Virus record (IMG/VR): IMGVR_UViG_2162886007_000107
Location: 124,001-188,000 of that record
Strand: one strand, 5' to 3'
Length of the DNA: 64,000 bases
The notes under the pieces were generated by a model. The model did no database searches. It was not told the origin of the DNA and saw only the letters and a list, made by a program, of their open reading frames with translations. Shown in pieces: positions 2,427-45,334 of the stretch (its first letter is position 1; every line of letters begins with the position of its first letter). The position numbers and the translations under genes were made by a program.

Positions 2427-3401
2427 ATGAGAGACCGCGAACTTTATCGAGCCGCAGTTGAAGCCAACAATACTTTCCTGCGCACTCAAGAGAAACAAAT
2501 TTTTGATACGTTTCTTGTTACCAATTACATTAAAGATGCCATCTATGCACATCTTCAACAACTCAACGTTATTGGTGTTAAAGATGTTGCAGTTGTTTTT
2601 ACAAAAGACTTTACAAAGGGAAGGAGAAGCCCTGGCTATCAAAAAGCAGACGCTTCTTATGAAGATGGTGTACTAACCATTACTATTTATTCAAAGAGAT
2701 TTCTCATGGAACAGAACAATCTTAAAAATGCTCAAGCTGAAGAACTTGCATTGGGTCAGCCTTCTAATACCGCCACAGTTCTGGACGAACTTCGTAAACT
2801 TGATCCCGACACTCCTTTATCCCCATTGGCTGAAAAGTTTAATAGTTTGACTGAAGCGGTTGAAGAAATCATTCATCACCCTTTGGGCGACCTTGGTGCA
2901 CCCCCAACAGCCGTCAGAATAGGTGAAGCGCTTAAAGTCGATCAGAAGTATGCTTGGGCTGGTGATGTCTACGACTACCTGGACATGTACACAAAAGACA
3001 TCGAAGACGTTTTGGGTGTAACTGATATACGCCTGTACAAAGACGGTATCCGTATGGCGGTTGGGTTGTTGTTCGACGCTGCCGACAAGTACGAAGACAA
3101 AGAACGGAAGAAAAGCTTCAAGGCTTACGTTGTTCACAAAATGCTTTCCCACATTGATGACCTTACCAGACAGGTTGCTAAAGCCGAAGAGATGTTTACC
3201 GGTGTTAACCAAGGTCTACAGATGTTGAGCCAATCAACCAAAGGTTACCGCGAACCAATACCGCCCCATGGATTTACCGGACAGGTCATGCCAGAGATCC
3301 GTCAGCCAGATGCTTATGAACGAGCATTGACCAAACAGCGCCAGACTAGCATCATGGATGCAGCATTGTCAGCCGGTAAACCAGGTCCCTATATGGGCTG
3401 A
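2427..3401 (+). CDS. hypothetical protein, paralog of 1562..2356
   Basis: 324-aa ORF with RBS GAGGA upstream. Confidence 0.8.
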   Translation: MRDRELYRAAVEANNTFLRTQEKQIFDTFLVTNYIKDAIYAHLQQLNVIGVKDVAVVFTKDFTKGRRSPGYQKADASYEDGVLTITIYSKRFLMEQNNLKNAQAEELALGQPSNTATVLDELRKLDPDTPLSPLAEKFNSLTEAVEEIIHHPLGDLGAPPTAVRIGEALKVDQKYAWAGDVYDYLDMYTKDIEDVLGVTDIRLYKDGIRMAVGLLFDAADKYEDKERKKSFKAYVVHKMLSHIDDLTRQVAKAEEMFTGVNQGLQMLSQSTKGYREPIPPHGFTGQVMPEIRQPDAYERALTKQRQTSIMDAALSAGKPGPYMG

Positions 3402-3430
3402 AAGCTCCTATAACGCAAAATAGAGCCTTA

Positions 3431-3465
3431 TATACCCCCTACCCCATTGTGGGGTAGGGGGTATA
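3431..3465. terminator. bidirectional intrinsic terminator
   Basis: Perfect 16-bp stem TATACCCCCTACCCCA-TTG-TGGGGTAGGGGGTATA between convergent genes. Confidence 0.85.
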
Positions 3466-3498
3466 GGTTATTTCTCTTGCACGCCTATTTAGAGGTCG

Positions 3499-5031
3499 TC
3501 ATATCGAGTCAAAGTCTTTCAGGATATTCCCGTCAGCATCGAGACTAGTTTGTAAGCTTCTTCTGAAACGTGGTTTACCGTTGACGTCATGCTTCAACCC
3601 GTGGATTGGGTCAATGTCGTAGATCGCAAACCGATGTTCCGGTAGGCAACCTTCACCGCGCTGTTTACCAATGCAGAATGTCCAGTAAGACTTGTAAGAA
3701 GTCTTAGCAACGTGGAACGTAATCTCGACATCCACTTCGTTGGTAATCTTGGTAGAAGTTTCGGTGTATGATTTACCAGCTACTTCCTTGGCGAAATAAA
3801 CTTCCGACTCTTCATCAGCCTCCTGCAACCGTTTCTTGGCATCAGGAGATAATTGGTGAGGAGTAAGGAAGCATATACCACGACCAATAATAAACGCTCG
3901 AATCTTTCGAATGTGTAGCTGTAACTTGTCAGACTTGGAATCGCCTGGCAACATATCAAAGTTTTGCAGTGCGCAGTAGTCGTAAGCGTACCAAATGATC
4001 TCGTGACCTTTCAGCTCCAGCTTACGAACACGATCGAACATAGCTTGAGCGCTATCCTTGTTCGAATCGATTACTTTCATCAGCAGTACCCAGCCGTTGT
4101 CAGCAAAGCACTTGCAGATAGCATCGATGATTTCTTCACGACCAGCCATAGCGAAGTCTGGTTCAGCATCACTGGTGGAAGTGATAGCCAACTTGTACAT
4201 TCGCATGATGATCAAGTCCATGGTATCTTCCGCAGATTCCATGAGAACAGTTGGGATCTTCGAAGCATTACGCAACATGGGCTTGTTATACAAACCGACA
4301 GAGGCCGTGAGATGCGCTACAGTCAACGACTTACCACGGTTGGTCAGTGCGTTAAGCAGATAGAACTTACCACGTCGGAAACCACCATCAGGACTTAGAG
4401 CCAGGTTCAATGCCTGGATGCCGCTCTTGATGATGCCTTCCTTACTGTTCTCCATCTTGGCTTGTTCAATAACAGCGTGGAAACTGAGTCGATCAGCAGT
4501 GCTAATCTCAGACAGTACTTCACTCTGCTTCTCTTCGTACAAAGCACCCATGCGATCGTTGATCATGTCGCTGAGCATCACCCACTCATCTTTTGAGATG
4601 TCGGTGTGTTCTTTGAAGAAGAATTGCTTTACTGCTTTCTTCCACTTGTCAGCAAAACCTTTGTCTTCAAAAGACAAACGAACTTCACTCAAGTGTTTGT
4701 AGATGAGCTTGCGAGTAGCTTCATCATTCGGGCAATCTTCTAGGCCGTCCTCAATGGCTAATTTTATAGCCTCATCGTTCTTCGCGAAGATGCGGACTCT
4801 CTGCATCAAGACTGGTTTCATAACCGGTTCGTCGTCGGACTGTTTAAGTAGCCAGGCGATGGTGGATTTGATACCTTCTCGGATTTCCTTGTCTTGGGAG
4901 AAAACATCTGGAGGTGGAGGAGGAAGCTCTTCAAGAGTTTCTTCCAGTTCCTTCATCAGATTCGCGTCATTGAGTTTCTTGGCCTGGTACAGAGCCGAGA
5001 GCAGCTTAACCAAAACCAGTAAGTCATTCAT
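3499..5031 (-). CDS. dnaB: DnaB-like replicative helicase (phiKZ gp118-like)
   Basis: Walker A ALTNRGKS, MESAE (catalytic E), Walker B YAYDY, H3 motif TPHQLS; lies just upstream of the capsid gene as in phiKZ-like phages. Confidence 0.85.
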   Translation of the reverse strand: MNDLLVLVKLLSALYQAKKLNDANLMKELEETLEELPPPPPDVFSQDKEIREGIKSTIAWLLKQSDDEPVMKPVLMQRVRIFAKNDEAIKLAIEDGLEDCPNDEATRKLIYKHLSEVRLSFEDKGFADKWKKAVKQFFFKEHTDISKDEWVMLSDMINDRMGALYEEKQSEVLSEISTADRLSFHAVIEQAKMENSKEGIIKSGIQALNLALSPDGGFRRGKFYLLNALTNRGKSLTVAHLTASVGLYNKPMLRNASKIPTVLMESAEDTMDLIIMRMYKLAITSTSDAEPDFAMAGREEIIDAICKCFADNGWVLLMKVIDSNKDSAQAMFDRVRKLELKGHEIIWYAYDYCALQNFDMLPGDSKSDKLQLHIRKIRAFIIGRGICFLTPHQLSPDAKKRLQEADEESEVYFAKEVAGKSYTETSTKITNEVDVEITFHVAKTSYKSYWTFCIGKQRGEGCLPEHRFAIYDIDPIHGLKHDVNGKPRFRRSLQTSLDADGNILKDFDSI

Positions 5032-5703: not shown

Positions 5704-7899
5704 ATGGCATACCGCGAGATGGGCTTTGGTCTGCGTAACCAAGGCAATATGTTCAGCATGATCCGCGACCAGATCGCGGCCTCCGCTTTCAGCGCAGTAC
5801 AAGGTAACGAACAGTTCGGCGACTTCGCTTCGCAATTCGAGCTGAACCAGGTGCAAGGCGTTGAAAGCATGACCCTCAAAGGCATGTTGCACGAACGCCT
5901 CAGCACCCGTAACTACAACGCCTTCCACGGCGCCATGAACCGCGCAAGCGTTTCTCAGAGCGACATGGAAGACATCGTTGCTCGTACCGAAGACTTCTAC
6001 AAGACCGTTGGCGGTCTGGAAGGCTTCTCGATGCAGAACTTCAAGGGTTCGGAAGCCGACATCAAAGCGGCCAACATGACCCTGAACGCACAGTCTCACC
6101 TGCAGACCGCTGCTGCTGAAGCACTGTTCGCCACCGTCACCGTGAAGTACGAAGACGAAGGCGCCTCCCTGACCGTACGTGCTGCCGGCCTGGGTACTTA
6201 TGCCTACGGTAACACCGCCTGGCAACAAGCCTCCGATCTGAAGCCAATCTTCGGTCAACTGCGTACCGGCGAAATGTTCAAGGACGAAGTCCTGGCCATC
6301 TACCCTGTGTACCCTGATGACGCGAACGACGACACTCGTGAGCTGTTCGTCGACGCCGGTGTGGTTTCGCCATGGGGTGCTACCTACCCTGAAAACGACG
6401 CCTACGGTCGTGAAAACCACGACACCAGCTACCTGAAGGTTCCGGGCAACATCCCGAACTTCCTGGGTCTCTGCCAGGCTCCTGGTCAGCGTGCATGGAC
6501 TGCTACCGACGAAATCGAGTCCAACTCGATCATGGTCGAAGCCATCCAGGTTAGCGGTAAACTCGGTACTACCGACGTTACCTTCTTCATCAACACCCGT
6601 TCGATCTCGAACAACACCTTCATCACCTCGACCAACATCCAGTCTTCGGATGACCGTCGTCTGAACATCTACCTGAACCGCTTCAAAGGCTTCTCGGTTC
6701 TGGACAAGGATGGCAAGAACATCGGTGATACCCTGTTCAAGACCTTCAAGGACGCAGGCTTCGAACCGCTGCTGGACATTACCCTGACCGGTAACTTCCA
6801 ACGCCAGAAGAACACCCTGACTCTGAACGCTGGTCAGGTCGGTGTGATCGCTCTGGAAGAAATCACCACTGGTAACACCATCGACCGTGGCCGTGCAAAC
6901 GACCAACAGAAAGCGCTGCTGAAGTCGCTGACTGGCGGTATGGTTAACGGCGCTCGCGTTCGCGCGAATGTGAACAACATCTCGCGTGGTAACTTCGGCT
7001 ACCGCATCGAAGTGTTCGACACCATCAAGCACCTGCCGATCCATCGCGGTTCGCCGGTTTCGGTCAAGTACCCAATCTCGAAAGACGACGTTAACCAGGG
7101 TTCCCTGGACTACGCCATCAGCCAGATGTCGGTCGCGATCAACAACCAGTGCTCGAAGAAAGCGTTCGACATGGCTCAAGAGCACCTCCAGTACATCACC
7201 TCGATCGACGGCTACCCTGTTGTGTCCAACAACCAGGGCTCCAACGTTCTTCCTGGTATGCACTACGTGCAGGCTTCGGCCATCAACCGCAAGATCTCGC
7301 TGAAAGAATCCGTCTCCACTGTGGATTCCACCGGCATCTTCGAAGCGGTATCGGCCGTGTTCACCAACGAACTGAGCGACATCACTGCTGCCCTGGCTAC
7401 CAAGTCCGGCATCATGGCGATCGCTGAGTACGGCGGTACCGTAGCACCGAAGTGGAACATCATCGTGCACCAGAACCTGGCGCGCTTCCTGATGCACCTC
7501 GGCGATGCTCGTACCCTGGGTGCTGGCGTTGGCATGAAGGCGGTGGAAACCAACTTCACCAGCCAGATCGGTCAGATCCTGATCGTGACTGAGAACGACT
7601 CGACTTCCGACTACATCAACCCTCTGGGTGGTATCGGCGTCATGGTCTCGAAAGAGAACATCGTTGTTCAAGGTAACGTGACTCGTGATCAGCAAGACTT
7701 CGGTGTTGTCATGACCATGCCTACCTACAAGCACTGGGCGCTGAACCCAATCATCGGCTCGCTGGTGATCGAAGACGCGCACGAGTTCCTGGGCGACGAA
7801 GGTCTGCTGACCAAACTCGGCAAACAGAAAGTCGAGGTGCTGGGTCTGGCTGAAGGCCTGAAGGCAATCGCTGACGCACAGGCGCCAGTAACCCCGTAA
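5704..7899 (+). CDS. major capsid protein (phiKZ gp120-like)
   Basis: 731 aa (phiKZ-type capsid size), strongest codon bias in the window, position between DnaB and an RNAP subunit, strong terminator downstream. Confidence 0.85.
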   Translation: MAYREMGFGLRNQGNMFSMIRDQIAASAFSAVQGNEQFGDFASQFELNQVQGVESMTLKGMLHERLSTRNYNAFHGAMNRASVSQSDMEDIVARTEDFYKTVGGLEGFSMQNFKGSEADIKAANMTLNAQSHLQTAAAEALFATVTVKYEDEGASLTVRAAGLGTYAYGNTAWQQASDLKPIFGQLRTGEMFKDEVLAIYPVYPDDANDDTRELFVDAGVVSPWGATYPENDAYGRENHDTSYLKVPGNIPNFLGLCQAPGQRAWTATDEIESNSIMVEAIQVSGKLGTTDVTFFINTRSISNNTFITSTNIQSSDDRRLNIYLNRFKGFSVLDKDGKNIGDTLFKTFKDAGFEPLLDITLTGNFQRQKNTLTLNAGQVGVIALEEITTGNTIDRGRANDQQKALLKSLTGGMVNGARVRANVNNISRGNFGYRIEVFDTIKHLPIHRGSPVSVKYPISKDDVNQGSLDYAISQMSVAINNQCSKKAFDMAQEHLQYITSIDGYPVVSNNQGSNVLPGMHYVQASAINRKISLKESVSTVDSTGIFEAVSAVFTNELSDITAALATKSGIMAIAEYGGTVAPKWNIIVHQNLARFLMHLGDARTLGAGVGMKAVETNFTSQIGQILIVTENDSTSDYINPLGGIGVMVSKENIVVQGNVTRDQQDFGVVMTMPTYKHWALNPIIGSLVIEDAHEFLGDEGLLTKLGKQKVEVLGLAEGLKAIADAQAPVTP

Positions 7900-38000: not shown

Positions 38001-40469
38001 ATGCTTAAAAAGCTTATACTGGAAAATTACATTCCACTGTTATCCAGCGGTATCACTTCTGTCGAATTAGACATTAAGGGGATGGTGAACCTTTTCATCG
38101 CTCCCTCGGGGACTGGTAAAACAAGTATTCTGAAAGAACTCCATGCATTGCCACCTGAGAACGGTAATTACAAACAAGGTCGCAAGTATGTTGAGATCCA
38201 GCATCAAGGTAAGTTGTTTAAGTTGGATTCCAGAACCGGAGTAGGTAACGGACACAGTTTCAAGATTGGGGATGGTCCTGAACTGAACACTGGAGGAACT
38301 TTCAGTGCGCAGAAGGAACTGGTCTTCAACTACCTTGGTCGTATGAACTCTGATATTGTTAAAGTACTCAACGGATTGAAGATTCTTGATCGCTTATCAG
38401 CAATGTCGCCTAACCGTCGTAAAGATATCATCATGGCTGTGTATCCGAATGATACCAGTGAAGCACTTGATGTGTATCAAAAGCTCAAGACCGAACGTAA
38501 TGAGCTTAAGGCGACTATTAAAAATCAGGTAGCACGATTCACCGCGGAGAATGCAAAGCTTCAGCAGATCACCGCGACTGGTACAGCAGAACTGGAAGCA
38601 CGTATTAAACTCATTGACGAAGATGTAGCGAAGTCGTTGATGATGCGTGGTGAGTTGGCTAACATCAAAGCCAATCCAGAACTGCGGGTCAAGATGGAAC
38701 GATTCAACTTCCTTACAGACAAACTCTTGGTTAACAAACTGGGTGGTGGCCTGCATACGGAAGAAGAGTTGGTTAATGCATTGGGTACAGCTCAGAGTCT
38801 GATGGAAACTCATCAAGACCAGATGAATGTACTTAAGGGCATCATTGCTGAACACAGTGAGTTCTTGGATGGACTGGAGGATCTGTTAAAAGATCCAGAA
38901 GCCTTCCGTGAGCAAGCCAGGCATTTAGAAGAAGACATGGTGCGGACCAATCTTGGTTTGAGCCAGTATGATCAACTTCTTTTGCGAGCAGACGTATTTA
39001 ACGATCCAGATACACCTTTAGACGGCCTACAGCACATCGTAGAAGCGTTTAAAACTTACTTGAATGACGTTGTCATGGCCAGCAGTGAAGACCTCACTAG
39101 AGCCACTTACAGGAAGTATCTGACTGATGATGAAGAACTGGGTAACCTTATCCGGAACCGCACTAATCAGTTAGAAGACTTGCGTCATAAGCTCAAGCAT
39201 TATCAGTCGATGGATCATGTTGAGTGTCCAGACTGTAACAGTAAGTTCAAGGTGGGTGTAACTCAGCAGGATATTGAGCGTCTGCAAGGTGACATTGTTC
39301 TAGCCACAGAGTTCTTGGAGACTTGTAAAGCGCGGAAAGAAAAGCTTCGTGCCAAGATCGACAATGATGCTGAGTGGTATCGTGGGATGAACAACTTGTA
39401 CGACTTCGTAAGAAGTAACGCGCAGGTTCGTTGCTTGCCGGAACTGGTCAAGGCTTACAACATCGGCAAAGCACCTTCTAATGTACTGTGTAACGTCCTT
39501 AGTGCTTACGTAGAGAGCGTTGAGCTTAAGCGTTACAAAGCAGTACTGGCCGAAGAAGAAAAGATCGTTAAGAGCCGTTTGGACTTAATCAACCGAGAAG
39601 GTCTGACAGACACTGCCGAATACGTAACCCGTAAAGAAGCAGAGTTGTCCAAGTCGACTGGGTTGATGCAGTACTATCAAGGTAAGGTAACTACTCTTAC
39701 TGCGGAACTTAATAACGTCAGGTTCTACCAGCGTGATCTGGAAGAGCTGCGTTCACTGCGTCGTGAGATCTTTGCAGACTTTGCTAACCAGGCTAACGTC
39801 AAGCTGCGTGGTGCATTGGATGAACACGTCAGCCAGCTTCAAAGCGAAAAGAAAGAAGCCATGATGGGGTTGATTAGCGCCAGCAGTCTAACTGCGGTAG
39901 TACAATCCATCTCAGCCGACATTGAAATGAAGAAACGTCGGTTGGCTATCGTTGAAGTATGGATGGACGGCATTTGTCCTAATAAAGGTTTGATCGGTAA
40001 GCTGATGGGCGATTTCATTAATTCCCTCTGTGGGAACATTAATGCGACCATCAAACGTTTCTGGAACACTACTTTGTACATCAAGCCATGTGCAAAAGAG
40101 AACGGTGACCTGAACTACAAATTCCCGGTAGTAACTGGGGATAAGGAACCAACTCCAGACGTCAGCGATTGCAGTGGTGGTGAAACCGATGCAGTTGACT
40201 GGGCTTTCCGATTTGTTCTTATGGATTACGTGGGCTTCCCTTTCCCGTTGGTATTGGATGAGGTGGGTATCACGTTCGATGAAATCAAAAGGGGTCGATT
40301 CTTGGACTTCCTCAAAGATTACACCATGGGCAAGAACCCGCGTCAGCTCTTTATGGCTTCGCACTACTTCGCTCAATACGGTGTTTTCAACAAGCCGAAC
40401 ATCATTGGTTTACGACACGAGGGACTCACCTTACCAGGCCAGGCCAACACGAATACTGTGATTGCGTAG
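38001..40469 (+). CDS. sbcC: SbcC/Rad50-like SMC ATPase
   Basis: Walker A APSGTGKTS, coiled coils, zinc hook CPDC, signature CSGGE, Walker B LVLDE. Confidence 0.9.
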   Translation: MLKKLILENYIPLLSSGITSVELDIKGMVNLFIAPSGTGKTSILKELHALPPENGNYKQGRKYVEIQHQGKLFKLDSRTGVGNGHSFKIGDGPELNTGGTFSAQKELVFNYLGRMNSDIVKVLNGLKILDRLSAMSPNRRKDIIMAVYPNDTSEALDVYQKLKTERNELKATIKNQVARFTAENAKLQQITATGTAELEARIKLIDEDVAKSLMMRGELANIKANPELRVKMERFNFLTDKLLVNKLGGGLHTEEELVNALGTAQSLMETHQDQMNVLKGIIAEHSEFLDGLEDLLKDPEAFREQARHLEEDMVRTNLGLSQYDQLLLRADVFNDPDTPLDGLQHIVEAFKTYLNDVVMASSEDLTRATYRKYLTDDEELGNLIRNRTNQLEDLRHKLKHYQSMDHVECPDCNSKFKVGVTQQDIERLQGDIVLATEFLETCKARKEKLRAKIDNDAEWYRGMNNLYDFVRSNAQVRCLPELVKAYNIGKAPSNVLCNVLSAYVESVELKRYKAVLAEEEKIVKSRLDLINREGLTDTAEYVTRKEAELSKSTGLMQYYQGKVTTLTAELNNVRFYQRDLEELRSLRREIFADFANQANVKLRGALDEHVSQLQSEKKEAMMGLISASSLTAVVQSISADIEMKKRRLAIVEVWMDGICPNKGLIGKLMGDFINSLCGNINATIKRFWNTTLYIKPCAKENGDLNYKFPVVTGDKEPTPDVSDCSGGETDAVDWAFRFVLMDYVGFPFPLVLDEVGITFDEIKRGRFLDFLKDYTMGKNPRQLFMASHYFAQYGVFNKPNIIGLRHEGLTLPGQANTNTVIA

Positions 40470-40504
40470 GAAAATAACAGACCTACATTATCTGGTTAGT
40501 GTTA

Positions 40505-40528
40505 GGAGAACGGATTCGTCTGTTCTCC
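40505..40528 (+). promoter_or_regulatory. UUCG-capped hairpin in operon leader
   Basis: GGAGAACGGA-TTCG-TCTGTTCTCC, no U tract. Confidence 0.55.
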
Positions 40529-40592
40529 GGTAAGGTTAGTCAAAACTCTATGGGTCTTAAGCCAATTCCTAACTATTCCGGAGTATCTCCTA

Positions 40593-40865
40593 ATGCAACT
40601 CTCAGTATCCGTAACGCAAGATGATGTGGGGGCTCTGGTTCCCTCACCGATGGGGCATGGCGTTGCTTACGTCACCATCAACCACAACGATTCGCCGAAG
40701 AGTGCAATCATCAGTTTTGCTGGCATTAACCAGGCGGTCGCTACATTCGATGACTTCGGTACTCGTGCGCTGACCTACAACCTGCTTAACCCAGGCGCCT
40801 GTATGGTCATTCAGCGGTCTGTGGAAAACATCATCGAACACATGAATAACAACATGTTGGGGTGA
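40593..40865 (+). CDS. hypothetical protein
   Basis: 90 aa, GGAG RBS, first gene of the accessory region. Confidence 0.75.
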   Translation: MQLSVSVTQDDVGALVPSPMGHGVAYVTINHNDSPKSAIISFAGINQAVATFDDFGTRALTYNLLNPGACMVIQRSVENIIEHMNNNMLG

Positions 40866-40869
40866 GTCT

Positions 40870-41307
40870 ATGTCTCTGGATCGCGCTGCTGTAATTCGTA
40901 ATGCTAAACAACTGGCTGTTAGTCTTGGTCTTGACCCCAAGAATGTAGTACTTTCTGCCGGTTCCGCTTTGGTGTTGATGGGGCTTCGAAAAACTACCAG
41001 TGACTTGGATGTTGACGTTCCTAAAGAGTTCTTTGAAAAGCAGAAAGCACGGAAAGGAGCCAAACAAGGCATTATCGGTGAATACGTTGAATGGGATGGG
41101 ATCACTGATCTTCACCCTATCCTGTCAGAGTCAACTGTGGGGAAGGTAACAGTTGACTATGAAGGTGTGCGTGTTTACCACCCGGAATACCTTCTTGCTG
41201 TAAAAGAAGTAATGGTTGCTCACCCTGATCGCCAGCAGGATAAGGCTGCTCAGGATCGTAAAGACATCAAAGCGCTCAAAGAACTTTTGGAGCGTGTAGA
41301 AGCATAA
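40870..41307 (+). CDS. small Pol-beta-superfamily nucleotidyltransferase (intact GS...DxD)
   Basis: GSALVLMGLRKTTSDLDV motif; C-terminal K..QD..D..L helix. Confidence 0.75.
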   Translation: MSLDRAAVIRNAKQLAVSLGLDPKNVVLSAGSALVLMGLRKTTSDLDVDVPKEFFEKQKARKGAKQGIIGEYVEWDGITDLHPILSESTVGKVTVDYEGVRVYHPEYLLAVKEVMVAHPDRQQDKAAQDRKDIKALKELLERVEA

Positions 41308-41333
41308 CGTAAACCTCTGCCAAGGCATCTTAA

Positions 41334-41789
41334 ATGTCCAAGAAAATCACTTCCGTCAACCACGTGAACGAACTTGTTTACTCTTTCGCCAATGTCCATC
41401 AGGTTCCTGTTACGGATATGGTAGTGGGAGGCGGCGCTGCCCTCATGGCGCATGGATTGCGTGATGAGACTGATGACATCAACGTATGGATCGAAGAAGG
41501 TTATTTCGCTCGCCTGGCTGAACGTGAGAAGGTTATCTGTCACCCAATGACTGATACTGCTTTCAAGATCGATCATGCCGGTATCGAATTCTGGATTCGC
41601 AAGCTCAACCCGTATCACCAGTATGAACGCCTGGGGGTTCTGGAGGTTTACGGAGTGCTTGCACTGATCGTTCAGAAGCGTGGCGGTATTCTCCGTCCTG
41701 AACGACCAAAGGTCAAACGAGATCAAGATCGGGAAGACCTGATCAAACTCGACGTGATCTATCGCGAACGTAACAAAGTTTACGCTTGA
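41334..41789 (+). CDS. nucleotidyltransferase paralog with degenerate active site (DxN)
   Basis: GAALMAHGLRDETDDINV aligns without gaps to the previous gene; KRDQDREDL tail. Confidence 0.7.
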   Translation: MSKKITSVNHVNELVYSFANVHQVPVTDMVVGGGAALMAHGLRDETDDINVWIEEGYFARLAEREKVICHPMTDTAFKIDHAGIEFWIRKLNPYHQYERLGVLEVYGVLALIVQKRGGILRPERPKVKRDQDREDLIKLDVIYRERNKVYA

Positions 41790-41795
41790 GTATTA

Positions 41796-41824
41796 CCTGG
41801 CAGCCCTCATAAGGGGCTGCCAGG
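41796..41824 (+). terminator. hairpin, terminator candidate
   Basis: CCTGGCAGCCC-TCATAAG-GGGCTGCCAGG. Confidence 0.6.
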
Positions 41825-41862
41825 CTACCCTTATAGCTGCTATTTCAAATTTCGAGGTTCCT

Positions 41863-43815
41863 ATGCAGCACGAGGCCGATATCTTTAAGCGGATGGAAGA
41901 CCTGAGTAATCAAATTTCCAAACACGCTTATTTGTACTTTTACAAAGACAAATCTATCATCTCCGACTTTGCTTACGACGAGCTGACCAAGCAATTTAAA
42001 CAACTGTGCAAGGATCACCCTAAACTAGCCGAACTGTTTGAGATCAGAAACAAACCAGTCCCTATTCGGGAACCTGGCGGTCAAGGTCTGAAGGTTATTA
42101 CCTTTAATGAGCCGATGCTTAGTCTGGATAAGGTTTATACCCTAGACGAAATCGAACGGTTTAAAGCCAAGTTCCCTAAAGACACAGCTTTCTTTTACGA
42201 GCTGAAGTTGGACGGTTTGGCGCTGGAGATTGAATACAAGGACTGGAAGCTGTTTCGGATCACAACTCGTGGTAGTGGGCTGAGTGGTGAGGACGTTACT
42301 CACTCGCTGCCTTTGTTTGATAATTTACTGATGGACCTTCCACCTCATTTCCCACCTGACTTTAAAGTGCGCGGTGAAGCGATAGTTAGTTACGAGAACT
42401 ATCACATCTATAACGAAGCAGCCGCTAAGCCAGCCAAGAGTCCGCGTAATGCGGTTAGTGGTTGGGTACGAGCCCTTAAGAAGAACCAAAATAAGCAAGC
42501 CTTTGGTTTAGTTTACTTCTACGTTTACTGGGTAAATGATTCCCTTGGGTGCAAAACCTACGAGGATCTGCGTAATCAGTTGTTTAACGCTGGGTTCAAT
42601 GCTCCTCCACAGGCTTCCATGGAAGCGATCCGTGATGAAGTCGATAGTCAAGATTGGCCTGCTGACGGTATTGTCATTAAGGTCAATGACCTGGAGCTGC
42701 GTAAAGCAACAGGAGAAAACAATCAGTTCCCATTGTGGGCTACTGCTTGGAAGTATCCAAACAAAGAACTGACCACTCCTATCGAAGACGTTGAATGGAA
42801 TACAGGTATGACTGGCCGGGTAACACCAGTTGGTATTTATAACCCGGTTCATTTCGGTAGCGTGGAATGTAGTCGTGCTTCTATCGACAACTACTTCCAG
42901 TTCATGAAGCTCGGTCTACGCAAAGGCAGCGTCGTTACTGTTAGTAGAAACGGCGATGTTATCCCGCGTATTGTTGAGATGGTTGAGGAGGGAGATGGCG
43001 AACACTTCCAGGCTCCAGAGACCTGCCCAAGCTGCGGTAGTCTCTTGGAAGTACGTAAGGGCAAAACCAGTGCTGATCTCATCTGTAACAACGTTGTAGA
43101 GTGTCCTGAGCAGCTCATGCGTCGTTGTGAAGAGATGGTTAGCAAGAAGTGCTTGGACATTGAAGGTTTAGGCCCTGTGAAGATTGCAGAGCTTATTGAA
43201 GGTGGCCATGTTACTCGTACCGCCGACATTTTTAAGACGATGATTCCGATGCCTCCTAAAGCTTTAATCCAACTGCTTAGTTGTCAGGAGCAGCCGGCGC
43301 ACATCATCATCAAGGCATTGGGTCTACCAAAGATCGACTTGACTCGTGCTAAGAAGTTGGCAAGCGCTTGGCCTAGAGATACCAGTTTGATCGAGTTCCT
43401 CAAGGACACTGATCAACTCATGGCTATTGACGGTATTTCTGCGGGGATTGCTTTCCCTATTGCCAAGATCATGAAGAACGCGGACTTTGTAGCCAATGCT
43501 GAGGCTATCCTTGCTGTCCTTAAAGAAGATAGTTCCAAGGATAAGCAAGAGTACTGGATCAAAGGTTGCATCACAGGTTCTCTGGGGCAGTCTAGAGACG
43601 AACTAAAGGAGGTGTTTGGTGAACACGGCATTGAGCTAGTAGAAGACCTGACTAAGGACTGTCAGTTCCTTATTGTGGGCGAGCGTCCGGGGTTAAGTAA
43701 GAAATTAAAAGCAACTGAGCTGGGCATCGCTATAGTCGAAGGATCTAACGCGACCAGTATCGAAAAACTCATTGAAGAAATCAAATCAAGGGTACCGGGT
43801 AATGTCAACTCCTAA
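41863..43815 (+). CDS. ligA: NAD-dependent DNA ligase
   Basis: ISDFAYD (domain Ia), ELKLDG (adenylated K), RGEA, DGIVIK, AWKY, TG.VTP, CPSC..C..C zinc finger, C-terminal BRCT. Confidence 0.95.
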   Translation: MQHEADIFKRMEDLSNQISKHAYLYFYKDKSIISDFAYDELTKQFKQLCKDHPKLAELFEIRNKPVPIREPGGQGLKVITFNEPMLSLDKVYTLDEIERFKAKFPKDTAFFYELKLDGLALEIEYKDWKLFRITTRGSGLSGEDVTHSLPLFDNLLMDLPPHFPPDFKVRGEAIVSYENYHIYNEAAAKPAKSPRNAVSGWVRALKKNQNKQAFGLVYFYVYWVNDSLGCKTYEDLRNQLFNAGFNAPPQASMEAIRDEVDSQDWPADGIVIKVNDLELRKATGENNQFPLWATAWKYPNKELTTPIEDVEWNTGMTGRVTPVGIYNPVHFGSVECSRASIDNYFQFMKLGLRKGSVVTVSRNGDVIPRIVEMVEEGDGEHFQAPETCPSCGSLLEVRKGKTSADLICNNVVECPEQLMRRCEEMVSKKCLDIEGLGPVKIAELIEGGHVTRTADIFKTMIPMPPKALIQLLSCQEQPAHIIIKALGLPKIDLTRAKKLASAWPRDTSLIEFLKDTDQLMAIDGISAGIAFPIAKIMKNADFVANAEAILAVLKEDSSKDKQEYWIKGCITGSLGQSRDELKEVFGEHGIELVEDLTKDCQFLIVGERPGLSKKLKATELGIAIVEGSNATSIEKLIEEIKSRVPGNVNS

Positions 43816-45334
43816 AGCAAAAGACATCATCAAAGATATGACCGCTGTGATCAATAACGCCAAGGCTACTCCCAAAGATGTGGAGTTGGCTACCAAAATC
43901 GTCAACGGCGCAGTTAGTGGGAAACCAGGTGCCGGCCTCAAGCCTAGCCTCAAACTGGTCGATGTCAAACTCAAGCCAGTCGAAAAAGCGGCAGATAAGC
44001 CGGATGCGGCCGTAAAGGGTCCTTCTCCGGTCTTCAAGCAAGAGCATCGTTACGGTCGTAAAGTCACCACCAAGGTTGCTCTTTCCCAAGTGGGTGAAGA
44101 AATCGTCAGCATTGAAGATTTCGATCGCATGACTACTGGTGTAGTGGTGATGGGTCGTCTGCTGCAGCCGGTAGAAACCCGCGAGGCTAACAACCTGCGT
44201 GGTGGTTTCAGCAGTGGTTTCCGTCGCATGGACCATGAGGACGATCTGGATGATCCGTTCCTCATCAATACCTATCAGCATACTCGCGGCGCTGACTTCC
44301 TGAACGTTAATGGTGAAGACAAAACTCCGTTCAACGTTTATCGCTTTACCTTGAACAATCGAGCCACTACTGTCCTGATGGATGAAACGTCCAAACTGCG
44401 GCTCGGCGAAAACCAAGGCGATGGCGTTGAATGGGATCTGCGCGATGAGCACATCAACCGTGATGGTCCCGTTATCATCATCATGAAGAACTCTATCGCG
44501 GTCGATTGCCACTTCTACGATCAGGTTACCCTGGTTGGTGTTATAGCCAAGGAAAGCACCTTCCAGTCTTCGGCTGTTGCCAATTACGAACAGCCTCCTG
44601 TGATGATGAATCGTCTTCCTTGGAGTTCGCGTCGTCGTTACCACTACAGCTTCAAGAAAGAACAGCGTACGCAAATCACTGGTACTACCTTGACCAACAT
44701 GGTTATCGACAACTCCGATATCCCTGCCGGTGGTAGTTACTACAACGGTAACATTCGCGATTCGATCATCGAATGCCCTGGCCAGGTCACCTTCCGTGAT
44801 GCTTCGGTTTACGAGTCCACTGTGAAAGCAGTAAATCGTCTGTTCCTGGGCAAGGTAACCATGAAGGCTTGCAGCATTGAAGCCAAAGGCGAAATCCGTC
44901 TGCACATGCCATCATTGACCGACATGTGGCTGCGCGCTGACAGTATCTATGCTCGCAACAAGTTCGCGATCACCAAGATCGAAGTACCTAACCCAGCACA
45001 CACGGATGACTACACCCTCATCCGCACCAGCAGCCAGGAAATGATCCTGCAACTCGGTCGCAACGGTGAGTTCACCATCAAGCTGGGTGCCGAACCTTGG
45101 TCGTTGGCTCACGAACTGCGTGAATGGTTGCGCAAGAATGACCTGCCGGAAGAGAACGAAGCCAAGGGTACCCCTGACGCCCCGTACTCGCCGATCACTG
45201 AGTCGGTTCACACTTACGTGATCGACACTGTCATCTCGCGTATTAAAGTCATCAACATGTTGGATGACACGGTCGAAACCGCTCGCAACTTGGAATCCAA
45301 GGATATGAGCCGTTACTTCCACCGTTACTTCTAA
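43802..45334 (+). CDS. hypothetical protein with basic N-terminus and central beta-solenoid-like region
   Basis: ATG 43802 (MSTPKAK); repeated short beta units (LTNMVIDNSDI...IRDSII...VYESTV). Confidence 0.7.
   Translation: MSTPKAKDIIKDMTAVINNAKATPKDVELATKIVNGAVSGKPGAGLKPSLKLVDVKLKPVEKAADKPDAAVKGPSPVFKQEHRYGRKVTTKVALSQVGEEIVSIEDFDRMTTGVVVMGRLLQPVETREANNLRGGFSSGFRRMDHEDDLDDPFLINTYQHTRGADFLNVNGEDKTPFNVYRFTLNNRATTVLMDETSKLRLGENQGDGVEWDLRDEHINRDGPVIIIMKNSIAVDCHFYDQVTLVGVIAKESTFQSSAVANYEQPPVMMNRLPWSSRRRYHYSFKKEQRTQITGTTLTNMVIDNSDIPAGGSYYNGNIRDSIIECPGQVTFRDASVYESTVKAVNRLFLGKVTMKACSIEAKGEIRLHMPSLTDMWLRADSIYARNKFAITKIEVPNPAHTDDYTLIRTSSQEMILQLGRNGEFTIKLGAEPWSLAHELREWLRKNDLPEENEAKGTPDAPYSPITESVHTYVIDTVISRIKVINMLDDTVETARNLESKDMSRYFHRYF

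Follow-up and report, generated by a model that had tools for sequence, protein, structure and literature searches.

The window that we analyzed is a 64-kb stretch of DNA, bases 124001 to 188000 of the 236,430-bp IMG/VR virus record IMGVR_UViG_2162886007_000107. It carries a unit of three small genes, which is placed between the gene of an SMC-like ATPase and the gene of a NAD-dependent DNA ligase, both here and in Pseudomonas phage EL (Table 1). The first gene of the unit encodes an acidic 90-aa protein. The second and third genes, here called copy 1 (P0001) and copy 2 (P0002), encode two proteins that resemble each other and carry a nucleotidyltransferase (NTase) motif. The original prediction, made from the DNA letters, described them as an intact enzyme and its degenerate twin. 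We asked what the two proteins are, how copy 2 is maintained, and what the pair might do for the phage.

Fold and active sites of the two paralogues

The two adjacent genes of about 150 codons had been predicted to encode proteins that align without gaps over the motif and share a C-terminal stretch, and this was borne out. The ungapped alignment runs over VVLSAGSALVLMGLRKTTSDLDVDV and MVVGGGAALMAHGLRDETDDINVWI, and the C-terminal K..QD..D..L stretch is common to both copies. BLASTP aligned copy 1 with copy 2 at an E value of 1e-6 and 24% identity. The PHROG profile phrog_12854 matched copy 1 at 8.1e-21 (profile positions 2 to 133 of 137) and copy 2 at 1.2e-14 (positions 8 to 132). With both proteins matching the same profile at these levels, chance cannot account for their similarity. 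We place copy 1 and copy 2 in the NTase fold superfamily and in phrog_12854, as products of one ancient duplication. They are the only phrog_12854-type members in the whole virus record.

We built AlphaFold2 models with a 150-sequence alignment and placed the structures by Foldseek and VIA-align. The copy 1 model had a predicted local distance difference test score (pLDDT) of 96.4 and a predicted template modeling score (pTM) of 0.89, and the copy 2 model had a pLDDT of 96.2 and a pTM of 0.90. Both have the α/β NTase core and were placed in the Pol-beta nucleotidyltransferase fold. The structure comparison gave two values per structure, under no column headings: TM1012, 10.8 and 10.5; MenT1, 9.4 and 10.8; LnuA, 10.3 and 9.3; ANT(2'')-Ia, 9.8 and 9.9; MenT3/TglT, 9.5 and 9.5; the AbiEi C-terminal domain, 9.3 and 8.2; and JHP933, 8.5 and 8.3. 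These matches stand well clear of the unrelated rows and extend over almost the whole protein. The likeness to AbiEii, MenT and ANT(2'') that had been suspected from the letters is therefore found at the level of the fold, since the nearest structures include MenT1, MenT3, JHP933, LnuA and ANT(2''). Giant-virus poly(A) synthases were also among the Foldseek matches.

Profile searches against PDB sequences gave one match. The 21-sequence profile A1 found JHP933, which we take to be a DUF1814/AbiEii-family protein, at an E value of 0.004, with G..AL..GL.R.S.DLDFD and K...R.K..D..D..L in register. The same search with A2 (wide family), A4 (subfamily) or A6 (copy-2 clade) returned chance-level matches only. 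A single co-fold of copy 1 with copy 2, for which controls were not run, scored 0.00, and this value weighs neither for nor against binding.

Residue conservation was counted over 150 family representatives and numbered by copy 1. The most strongly conserved positions are D129 (99%), R40 (98%), G31 (95%) and D45 (93%), followed by K112 (86%), T43 (84%), D47 (84% D, 13% N), D132 (81%) and D49 (60%). Copy 1 has the full MenT/AbiEii-type set: G31, R40, T43, D45-x-D47, D49, K112, R121, K125 and D129-x-x-D132. It also has G-[GSA] followed 9 to 13 residues on by D-h-[DE]-h (G31-S32 ... D45-L-D47-V). When the four AbiEii/MenT motifs are considered, copy 1 has [ST]-x-D-x-D, the motif III Lys and the motif IV D-x-x-D. 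The spacing of its T43, D45, D47, K112, D129 and D132 matches that of T39, D41-x-D43, K137, D149 and D152 in MenT1. In that enzyme, T39 is the phospho-acceptor, D41-x-D43 coordinates Mg2+, K137 stabilizes the α-phosphate, and D149 is predicted to contact the ribose (PMC11375011).

Copy 2 reads T46-D-D48-I-N50-V-W52 in place of T-x-D-x-D-x-D. The second metal-binding Asp is gone, and a Trp stands for the third Asp of D-L-D-V-D. The protein keeps T46, D48, K115, R124 and D132-x-x-D135. However, it lacks the D-h-[DE]-h acidic pair, because the stretch reads D48-I-N50-V. Therefore, copy 2 would not be expected to carry out canonical two-metal transfer. The assignment of the canonical acidic pair to copy 1 and of D-x-N to copy 2 had been made in the original prediction and is correct. 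Less well founded was its reading of S>A in the copy-2 GS motif as a sign of degeneracy. The family has A in 64, G in 62 and S in 19 of the 150 members at this position (position 32), so the change carries no meaning. The candidate third carboxylate of copy 1 is D80, which is D in 55% and S in 20% of the family. In copy 2, the equivalent residue differs between alignments A1 and A2, being W87 or D74/D73.

Conservation, selection and pairing of copy 2

A profile search of 1.84 billion representatives yielded a family set of 693 clusters (cut at 50% identity) at an E value of 1e-3 or below. A maximum-likelihood tree of 150 of these clusters groups the D-x-N sequences, 19 clusters in all, into a single clade, with a Shimodaira-Hasegawa-like approximate likelihood ratio test (SH-aLRT) value of 99. 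The Asn is kept across the whole clade, which answers an earlier proposal to examine the D>N change in homologues. Invariant or nearly invariant in the clade are G32-G34, R43, D48, N50, W52, F58, P71, D74, R89, N92, Y94, K115, R124, R129, D132 and D135. P71, D74, R89, N92 and Y94 are conserved residues gained in this clade. An HPMTD stretch, W-x-R-K-x-N-x-Y and QKRGG are specific to it.

We then calculated the ratio of nonsynonymous to synonymous substitution rates (dN/dS) by the Nei-Gojobori method, with L015 as the closest relative. Against L015, dN/dS was 0.13 at a dS of 0.27 for copy 2, 0.17 at a dS of 0.45 for copy 1, and 0.075 for the ligase gene. The copy-2 ratio was below that of copy 1 in all five comparisons with estimable dS. 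Both copies are under purifying selection, and copy 2 is under stronger constraint than copy 1.

A copy-1-type gene lies directly upstream of the copy-2-clade gene in 17 of 17 distinct loci, with a spacing that ranges from an 8-nt overlap to about 100 nt. Besides the window and phage EL, these loci are nine metagenomic contigs found by identity, of which eight have the full module and the ninth is the short L005, and another six contigs from IMG/VR. In every one of them the copy-2 reading frame is intact. Because the two genes often overlap or abut, coupled expression is suggested. Outside the copy-2 lineage, the family members of other jumbo phages are single-copy.

Because copy 2 is conserved at least as tightly as copy 1, we consider it a working partner or a repurposed protein and not a dying copy. 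A dN/dS near 1 had been named beforehand as the mark of a decaying, functionless duplicate. The values for copy 2 are 0.11 to 0.15, the monophyletic clade of 19 clusters is deep, N50 and W52 are nearly invariant, and the frames are intact. On these grounds we rejected decay, to which we give practically no chance.

Transcription unit and phage context

The three-gene unit is bracketed by two conserved signals. Just 3' of the SMC-like gene and about 100 nt 5' of the 90-aa gene is AACAGACCTACATTATC. This sequence matches a "putative phage promoter" annotated at the equivalent spot in EL, and the motif is also found at L001 5179-5197. The core, ACCTAYATTA, is unchanged in seven related phages (alignment A7). 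We infer that AACAGACCTACATTATC acts as a promoter. Conserved in the relatives yet present at a single place in the 64 kb of the window, the core may represent a rare class of promoter. At the other end is the closing hairpin, which had been predicted at its exact position. It has a 12-bp stem and a z score of -2.75, and its consensus fold is conserved in seven relatives, with compensatory two-sided changes in 6 of 11 pairs. A simple terminator scan did not list this hairpin, because no T-run follows the stem. Directly after it, about 25 nt 5' of the ligase start codon, comes CCTTAT.GCTGC (CCTTATAGCTGC), which is invariant (alignment A8) and occurs once in the window. It is possibly the ligase gene's own promoter and would then be of a second type.

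The promoter motif and the covarying hairpin enclose exactly the 90-aa gene, copy 1 and copy 2. As anticipated, these genes appear to form a separate short transcription unit in front of the ligase gene. Three RNA libraries yielded contigs over parts of the unit (40525-40781, 40633-40853, 40353-40654, 40720-41080 and 41454-41686). They are a weak indication that the unit is transcribed, because DNA carry-over is not excluded. The 90-aa gene is present 5' of copy 1 in nine tabulated loci and has a dN/dS of 0.16 against L015. Searches of Pfam, NCBIfam, PADLOC and the Atlas gave no lead to the 90-aa protein. Its C-terminal motif, (S/I)-(V/I)-E-N-I-(I/V)-x-H-M-N-x-N-M-(L/V)-G, is strongly conserved in most relatives and absent from EL ORF119.

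Table 1. Genes and signals at the locus (positions in the window).
Feature	Position	Strand	Basis
SMC_N/Rad50-like ATPase gene, 822 aa; EL ORF118 counterpart	38001..40469	+	SMC_N at E 1.3e-4, under the Pfam cut-off
Promoter-like motif AACAGACCTACATTATC, core ACCTAYATTA at 40481-40490	40477..40493	+	conservation, EL annotation
90-aa gene, first of the unit; phrog_16812; EL ORF119 counterpart	40593..40865	+	ORF (open reading frame), PHROG match
Copy 1 (P0001), 145 aa, minimal Pol-beta-fold nucleotidyltransferase	40870..41307	+	ORF, fold, motifs
Copy 2 (P0002), 151 aa, paralogue with altered motif	41334..41789	+	ORF, fold, motifs
GC-rich hairpin, 12-bp stem, closes the unit; terminator-like, without T-run	41796..41824	+	fold, covariation
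Invariant motif CCTTATAGCTGC between hairpin and ligase gene	41829..41840	+	alignment A8
NAD-dependent DNA ligase gene, 650 aa, next transcription unit	41863..43815	+	orthologue domains, EL ORF122

The window phage is a giant (jumbo) phage and a relative of Pseudomonas phage EL. In EL the order is the same: ORF118 (822 aa), ORF119, ORF120, ORF121 and ORF122, with an RNase HI gene two genes further. Eight metagenomic relatives of about 150 to 240 kb also share it. ORF122 is annotated as a NAD-dependent ligase, and the ligase orthologues have DNA_ligase_aden and OB_DNA_ligase domains. A megablast search of the locus against GenBank phages found no match. The 822-aa protein has a Walker-A-like PSGTGKTS besides its subthreshold SMC_N match and is possibly a Rad50/SbcC-like ATPase. 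Its identity to relatives is 87 to 90% where the NTases show 65 to 72%, and its dN/dS is about 0.05. Following the ligase gene is a gene for a fast-evolving protein of about 500 aa (43772-45334; dN/dS 0.16 to 0.40) without a Pfam match. Its mechanically assigned TTG start at 43772 is probably too early, and the ATG at 43802 is likelier. In the relatives, this gene begins 4 nt before the ligase stop codon or exactly there. Samples from rhizosphere, soil, plants, wastewater and indoor sites contain sequence nearly identical to window positions 39000 to 44500 (sequencing runs X1 to X4, X12 and X17). Therefore, the phage or its close kin are environmentally widespread.

Among GenBank phages, the NTase family is confined to Pseudomonas and Ralstonia jumbo phages (EL-like phages, 201phi2-1, D6, RVTF4, RP12/RP31 and FLC), always annotated as hypothetical. 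Structural relatives in BFVD come from PhiEaH1, Phabio, Noxifer and RSF1. Every family context that we sampled is a large-phage contig or genome. Atlas summaries, which are the sole basis for a bacterial extent, place related clusters in Bacillota. The family domain is fused to a GNAT acetyltransferase in P0097 and to GNAT and NUDIX in P0159. By structure, RNase HII, RNase III, PLD and an ITPase-like domain are further fusion partners in Atlas/AFDB clusters, and CARD also occurs in 29% of the members of the RNase III cluster. A search for tandem two-domain fusions among the longer relatives found single domains only. In L011, another large phage, a family member present as a single copy is a few genes away from an Acb1-family protein and a DHH/DHHA1 phosphoesterase (2805-4097 and 6001-6414). 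Acb1 is an anti-CBASS phosphodiesterase family (CBASS, cyclic oligonucleotide-based antiphage signaling system), and the L011 neighborhood hints at counter-defense. Our literature searches found no study of the phrog_12854-type family or of EL ORF119 to ORF121. They also found no characterized phage counterpart of the pair, in agreement with the original prediction.

Possible roles and known systems

We favor, tentatively, the explanation that the unit encodes a MenT-like enzyme and a noncanonical paralogue, from one ancient duplication, that act together; we hold this to be plausible but somewhat short of probable. Copy 1 would be a Mg-dependent nucleotidyltransferase of the MenT/AbiEii structural type, to judge by its residues. 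It would most likely add nucleotides to the 3'-OH of an RNA end. Going by the MenT-type motifs, RNA or tRNA 3' ends are the favored candidate substrate, with tRNA acceptor ends leading. Copy 2 would keep the nucleotide-binding half-site (Thr, first Asp, Lys and D-x-x-D) and would still bind nucleotide. We suggest that it may be a regulatory or substrate-binding partner of copy 1, much as the NTase-like C-terminal domain of AbiEi binds and controls the toxin AbiEii. During infection, the pair might serve host takeover or counter-defense. The original prediction had offered a host-takeover enzyme, a tRNA-end repair enzyme or a decoy, and our results do not separate these three roles. A bolder form of this explanation, which we regard as rather unlikely, would make the pair a phage-borne offshoot of MenT/AbiE in which the regulator is the enzyme's own paralogue. 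Enzyme and pseudoenzyme would then form an obligate pair, with the 90-aa protein as a possible third component, that modifies the ends of host or phage RNA to take over translation or to undo a host defense. In that form, copy 2 may even be the main actor, with undescribed chemistry or an undescribed ligand in its D-x-N-x-W pocket.

Several observations weigh against the MenT-like explanation. The physical association of copy 1 with copy 2, which the original prediction cast as a heterodimer, is presumptive. Both proteins are near neutral in charge, which is not particularly suggestive of tRNA binding, and the window encodes no tRNA genes. The GNAT, NUDIX and ITPase-like fusions mean that small-molecule or nucleotide substrates fit as well as RNA, and the near-neutral charge and the PLD, RNase HII and RNase III fusions likewise leave room for such substrates. 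The window proteins do not match Pfam AbiEii (PF08843, DUF1814), and neither do any of the 150 family members at an E value of 0.01. Pfam, NCBIfam and PADLOC found no COG5340 AbiEi, MenA or winged helix-turn-helix gene beside the pair, whose neighbors are the 90-aa protein and the paralogue. Unexpectedly, the catalytic residues of copy 1 are not universal. The copy-1 sequence of the phage of L007, L008 and L026 reads GVEQEVENILAGI, with R40, T43, the three Asp residues and the C-terminal motif all missing. Three further copy-1-type clusters (P0069, P0074 and P0085) are motif-dead as well. Since the motif-dead copy 1 of L007 and L026 stands beside an unchanged copy 2, this lineage at least can do without catalysis by copy 1, and the main role may fall to copy 2.

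The L007 gene (4564-4992) is worth describing in its own right. It is a copy-1 orthologue in which every catalytic and nucleotide-binding motif has been replaced and the frame is intact, and it adjoins the unchanged copy 2. We looked for IMG/VR loci of P0069, P0074 and P0085 and found none, so that a motif-dead copy 1 paired with copy 2 is seen only in L007 and L026. P0042 and P0101 have D45 changed to S. The replaced motifs suggest that in at least some lineages neither member needs canonical catalysis for the pair to work, and the L007 pair would be a natural "double pseudoenzyme." The description of copy 2 as a degenerate twin thus holds in one respect, because the second metal-binding Asp is lost. 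However, it does not fit the stronger constraint on copy 2, its own invariant polar residues, or the lineages in which copy 1 is the motif-dead member.

The most serious alternative is that the two proteins have independent functions, although we think this unlikely. Copy 2 would have been repurposed, so that its old pocket, together with N50, W52, D74, R89, N92 and Y94, binds, sequesters or alters a nucleotide-derived ligand, and adjacency would reflect shared regulation only. The invariant polar residues specific to the copy-2 clade, its dN/dS below that of copy 1, and its lack of change where copy 1 is motif-dead all agree with this. So do P0087, a motif-altered relative (A-L-N-I-D) that stands alone in another jumbo phage, and the L011 family member near Acb1 and the DHH phosphoesterase. 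However, the copy-2-clade gene directly follows a copy-1-type gene without exception in the loci examined, and no search points to a ligand. Alternatively, one or both proteins could be a counter-defense decoy or antitoxin mimic that imitates the AbiEi domain and binds host AbiEii/MenT-type toxins or their partners and thereby neutralizes abortive-infection systems, with catalysis secondary. Catalytic residues are dispensable in several copy-1 lineages, AbiE has been described as a very common defense system (PMC11375011), and phage antitoxin mimics are an established strategy in the literature. We nevertheless consider a decoy improbable. True NTases match the pair as well as AbiEi or better, most copy-1 orthologues have the complete catalytic set, and D45, D47, K112 and D129 are 84 to 99% conserved family-wide. 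In addition, the literature searched reports no phage anti-AbiE protein.

The neighboring genes raise a different possibility, to which we give the same low probability as to the decoy. With the NAD ligase, RNase H and the SMC/Rad50-like ATPase, a minimal terminal or gap-filling transferase could serve as an accessory of DNA-end processing, like Pol X and ligase of African swine fever virus (ASFV). In other jumbo phages, however, the family member does not adjoin a ligase gene, and synteny in one phage lineage may be inherited and not functional. With a promoter motif and a hairpin of its own, the unit would not be cotranscribed with the ligase gene. The match to Pol X is also much weaker than those to MenT, ANT and TM1012. 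Very unlikely, in our view, are small-molecule NTases like ANT(2'')/Lnu that would modify an antibiotic-like or signaling molecule met during infection. The ANT and LnuA folds are close. However, the Pfam family Aminoglyc_resit gave no match, T-x-D-x-D / K / D-x-x-D is the MenT/AbiEii pattern, and such an activity offers no obvious benefit to a lytic phage.

Behind this pair stands an uncharacterized minimal NTase family of about 690 clusters at 50% identity, with no Pfam model, seen in our sample on large-phage contigs and genomes. In one phage lineage, it has become fixed as a tandem pair of intact and altered members under purifying selection. This suggests that phages use MenT/AbiEii chemistry for their own ends. 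The pair bears on whether phages independently evolved a system in which, as with AbiEi and AbiEii, an NTase is controlled by an NTase-like partner. Its members are small, well folded and easily expressed, and they suit questions about pseudoenzyme retention and the substrates of minimal NTases. EL ORF119 to ORF121 and their relatives gain a first structural annotation.

Scanning the three small proteins against Pfam, NCBIfam and PADLOC gave nothing useful, and in Pfam there was no match even at an E value of 10. For DUF6036 (PF19502), the window proteins had no match, and 3 of the 150 relatives matched weakly (best E value 0.0013; P0097 scored 18.4 bits against a cut-off of 23.6). Likeness to ANT(2'')/Lnu (PF10706) is at the fold level only, with no Pfam match. 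RlaP denotes the RNA-ligase-associated Pol-beta NTases of jumbo phages (PMC7824862). It had no Pfam match here either, and the adjoining ligase is a NAD-dependent DNA ligase in a separate unit. Because these sequence tests failed and no known antitoxin gene is adjacent, we do not file the pair under AbiEii, DUF6036, ANT(2'')/Lnu or RlaP.

By analogy, the two proteins look like miniature MenT/AbiEii enzymes. The NTases of that group are bacterial toxins or abortive-infection effectors, which block translation by extending tRNA ends. Like MenT1 (Rv0078A) and MenT3 (Rv1045) of Mycobacterium tuberculosis and AbiEii, the phage family has Ser/Thr-x-Asp-x-Asp, the Lys and the C-terminal Asp-x-x-Asp. 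The operon logic, a small upstream gene followed by an NTase gene, recalls MenA1-MenT1. In MenT1 and MenT3, the phosphorylated residues are T39 and S78, respectively. However, the phage proteins have 145 to 151 aa and not about 190 to 290 aa, and they are encoded by lytic-type jumbo phages and not by bacterial toxin-antitoxin loci of type IV/VII. At the system level there is a precedent for such a partnership, since AbiEi binds the NTase toxin AbiEii in a stable heterodimer and triggers autophosphorylation of the toxin (bioRxiv 10.64898/2026.01.19.700257; MenT1 and MenT3 are treated in PMC11375011). AbiEi's own antitoxic domain, at the C terminus, resembles an NTase (PMC7319586). AbiEi/MenA3 differs in that AbiEi carries a winged-helix DNA-binding domain at its N terminus and shows no recognizable NTase motifs, whereas the paralogy of copy 2 to its neighbor is clear from the sequence, and copy 2 keeps most pocket residues.

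Two other groups of NTases are close in fold. In contrast to TM1012 of Thermotoga maritima (PDB 2EWR/2FCL) and the DUF2204/DUF6036 minimal NTases, the window proteins fall under every Pfam threshold. They differ from LnuA and ANT(2'')-Ia in having no sequence-family match and no hint of antibiotic resistance in their context. The design of the pair, a duplicated NTase fold in which one copy lacks catalytic residues, is also that of Mimivirus/Megavirus poly(A) synthase and of NF45-NF90. The poly(A) synthase presumably consists of an active and an inactive NTase domain in tandem. However, those proteins are either domains fused in one chain or dimers of eukaryotes that carry additional domains, and they are unrelated in sequence, whereas the phage pair consists of two separate small proteins from adjacent genes.

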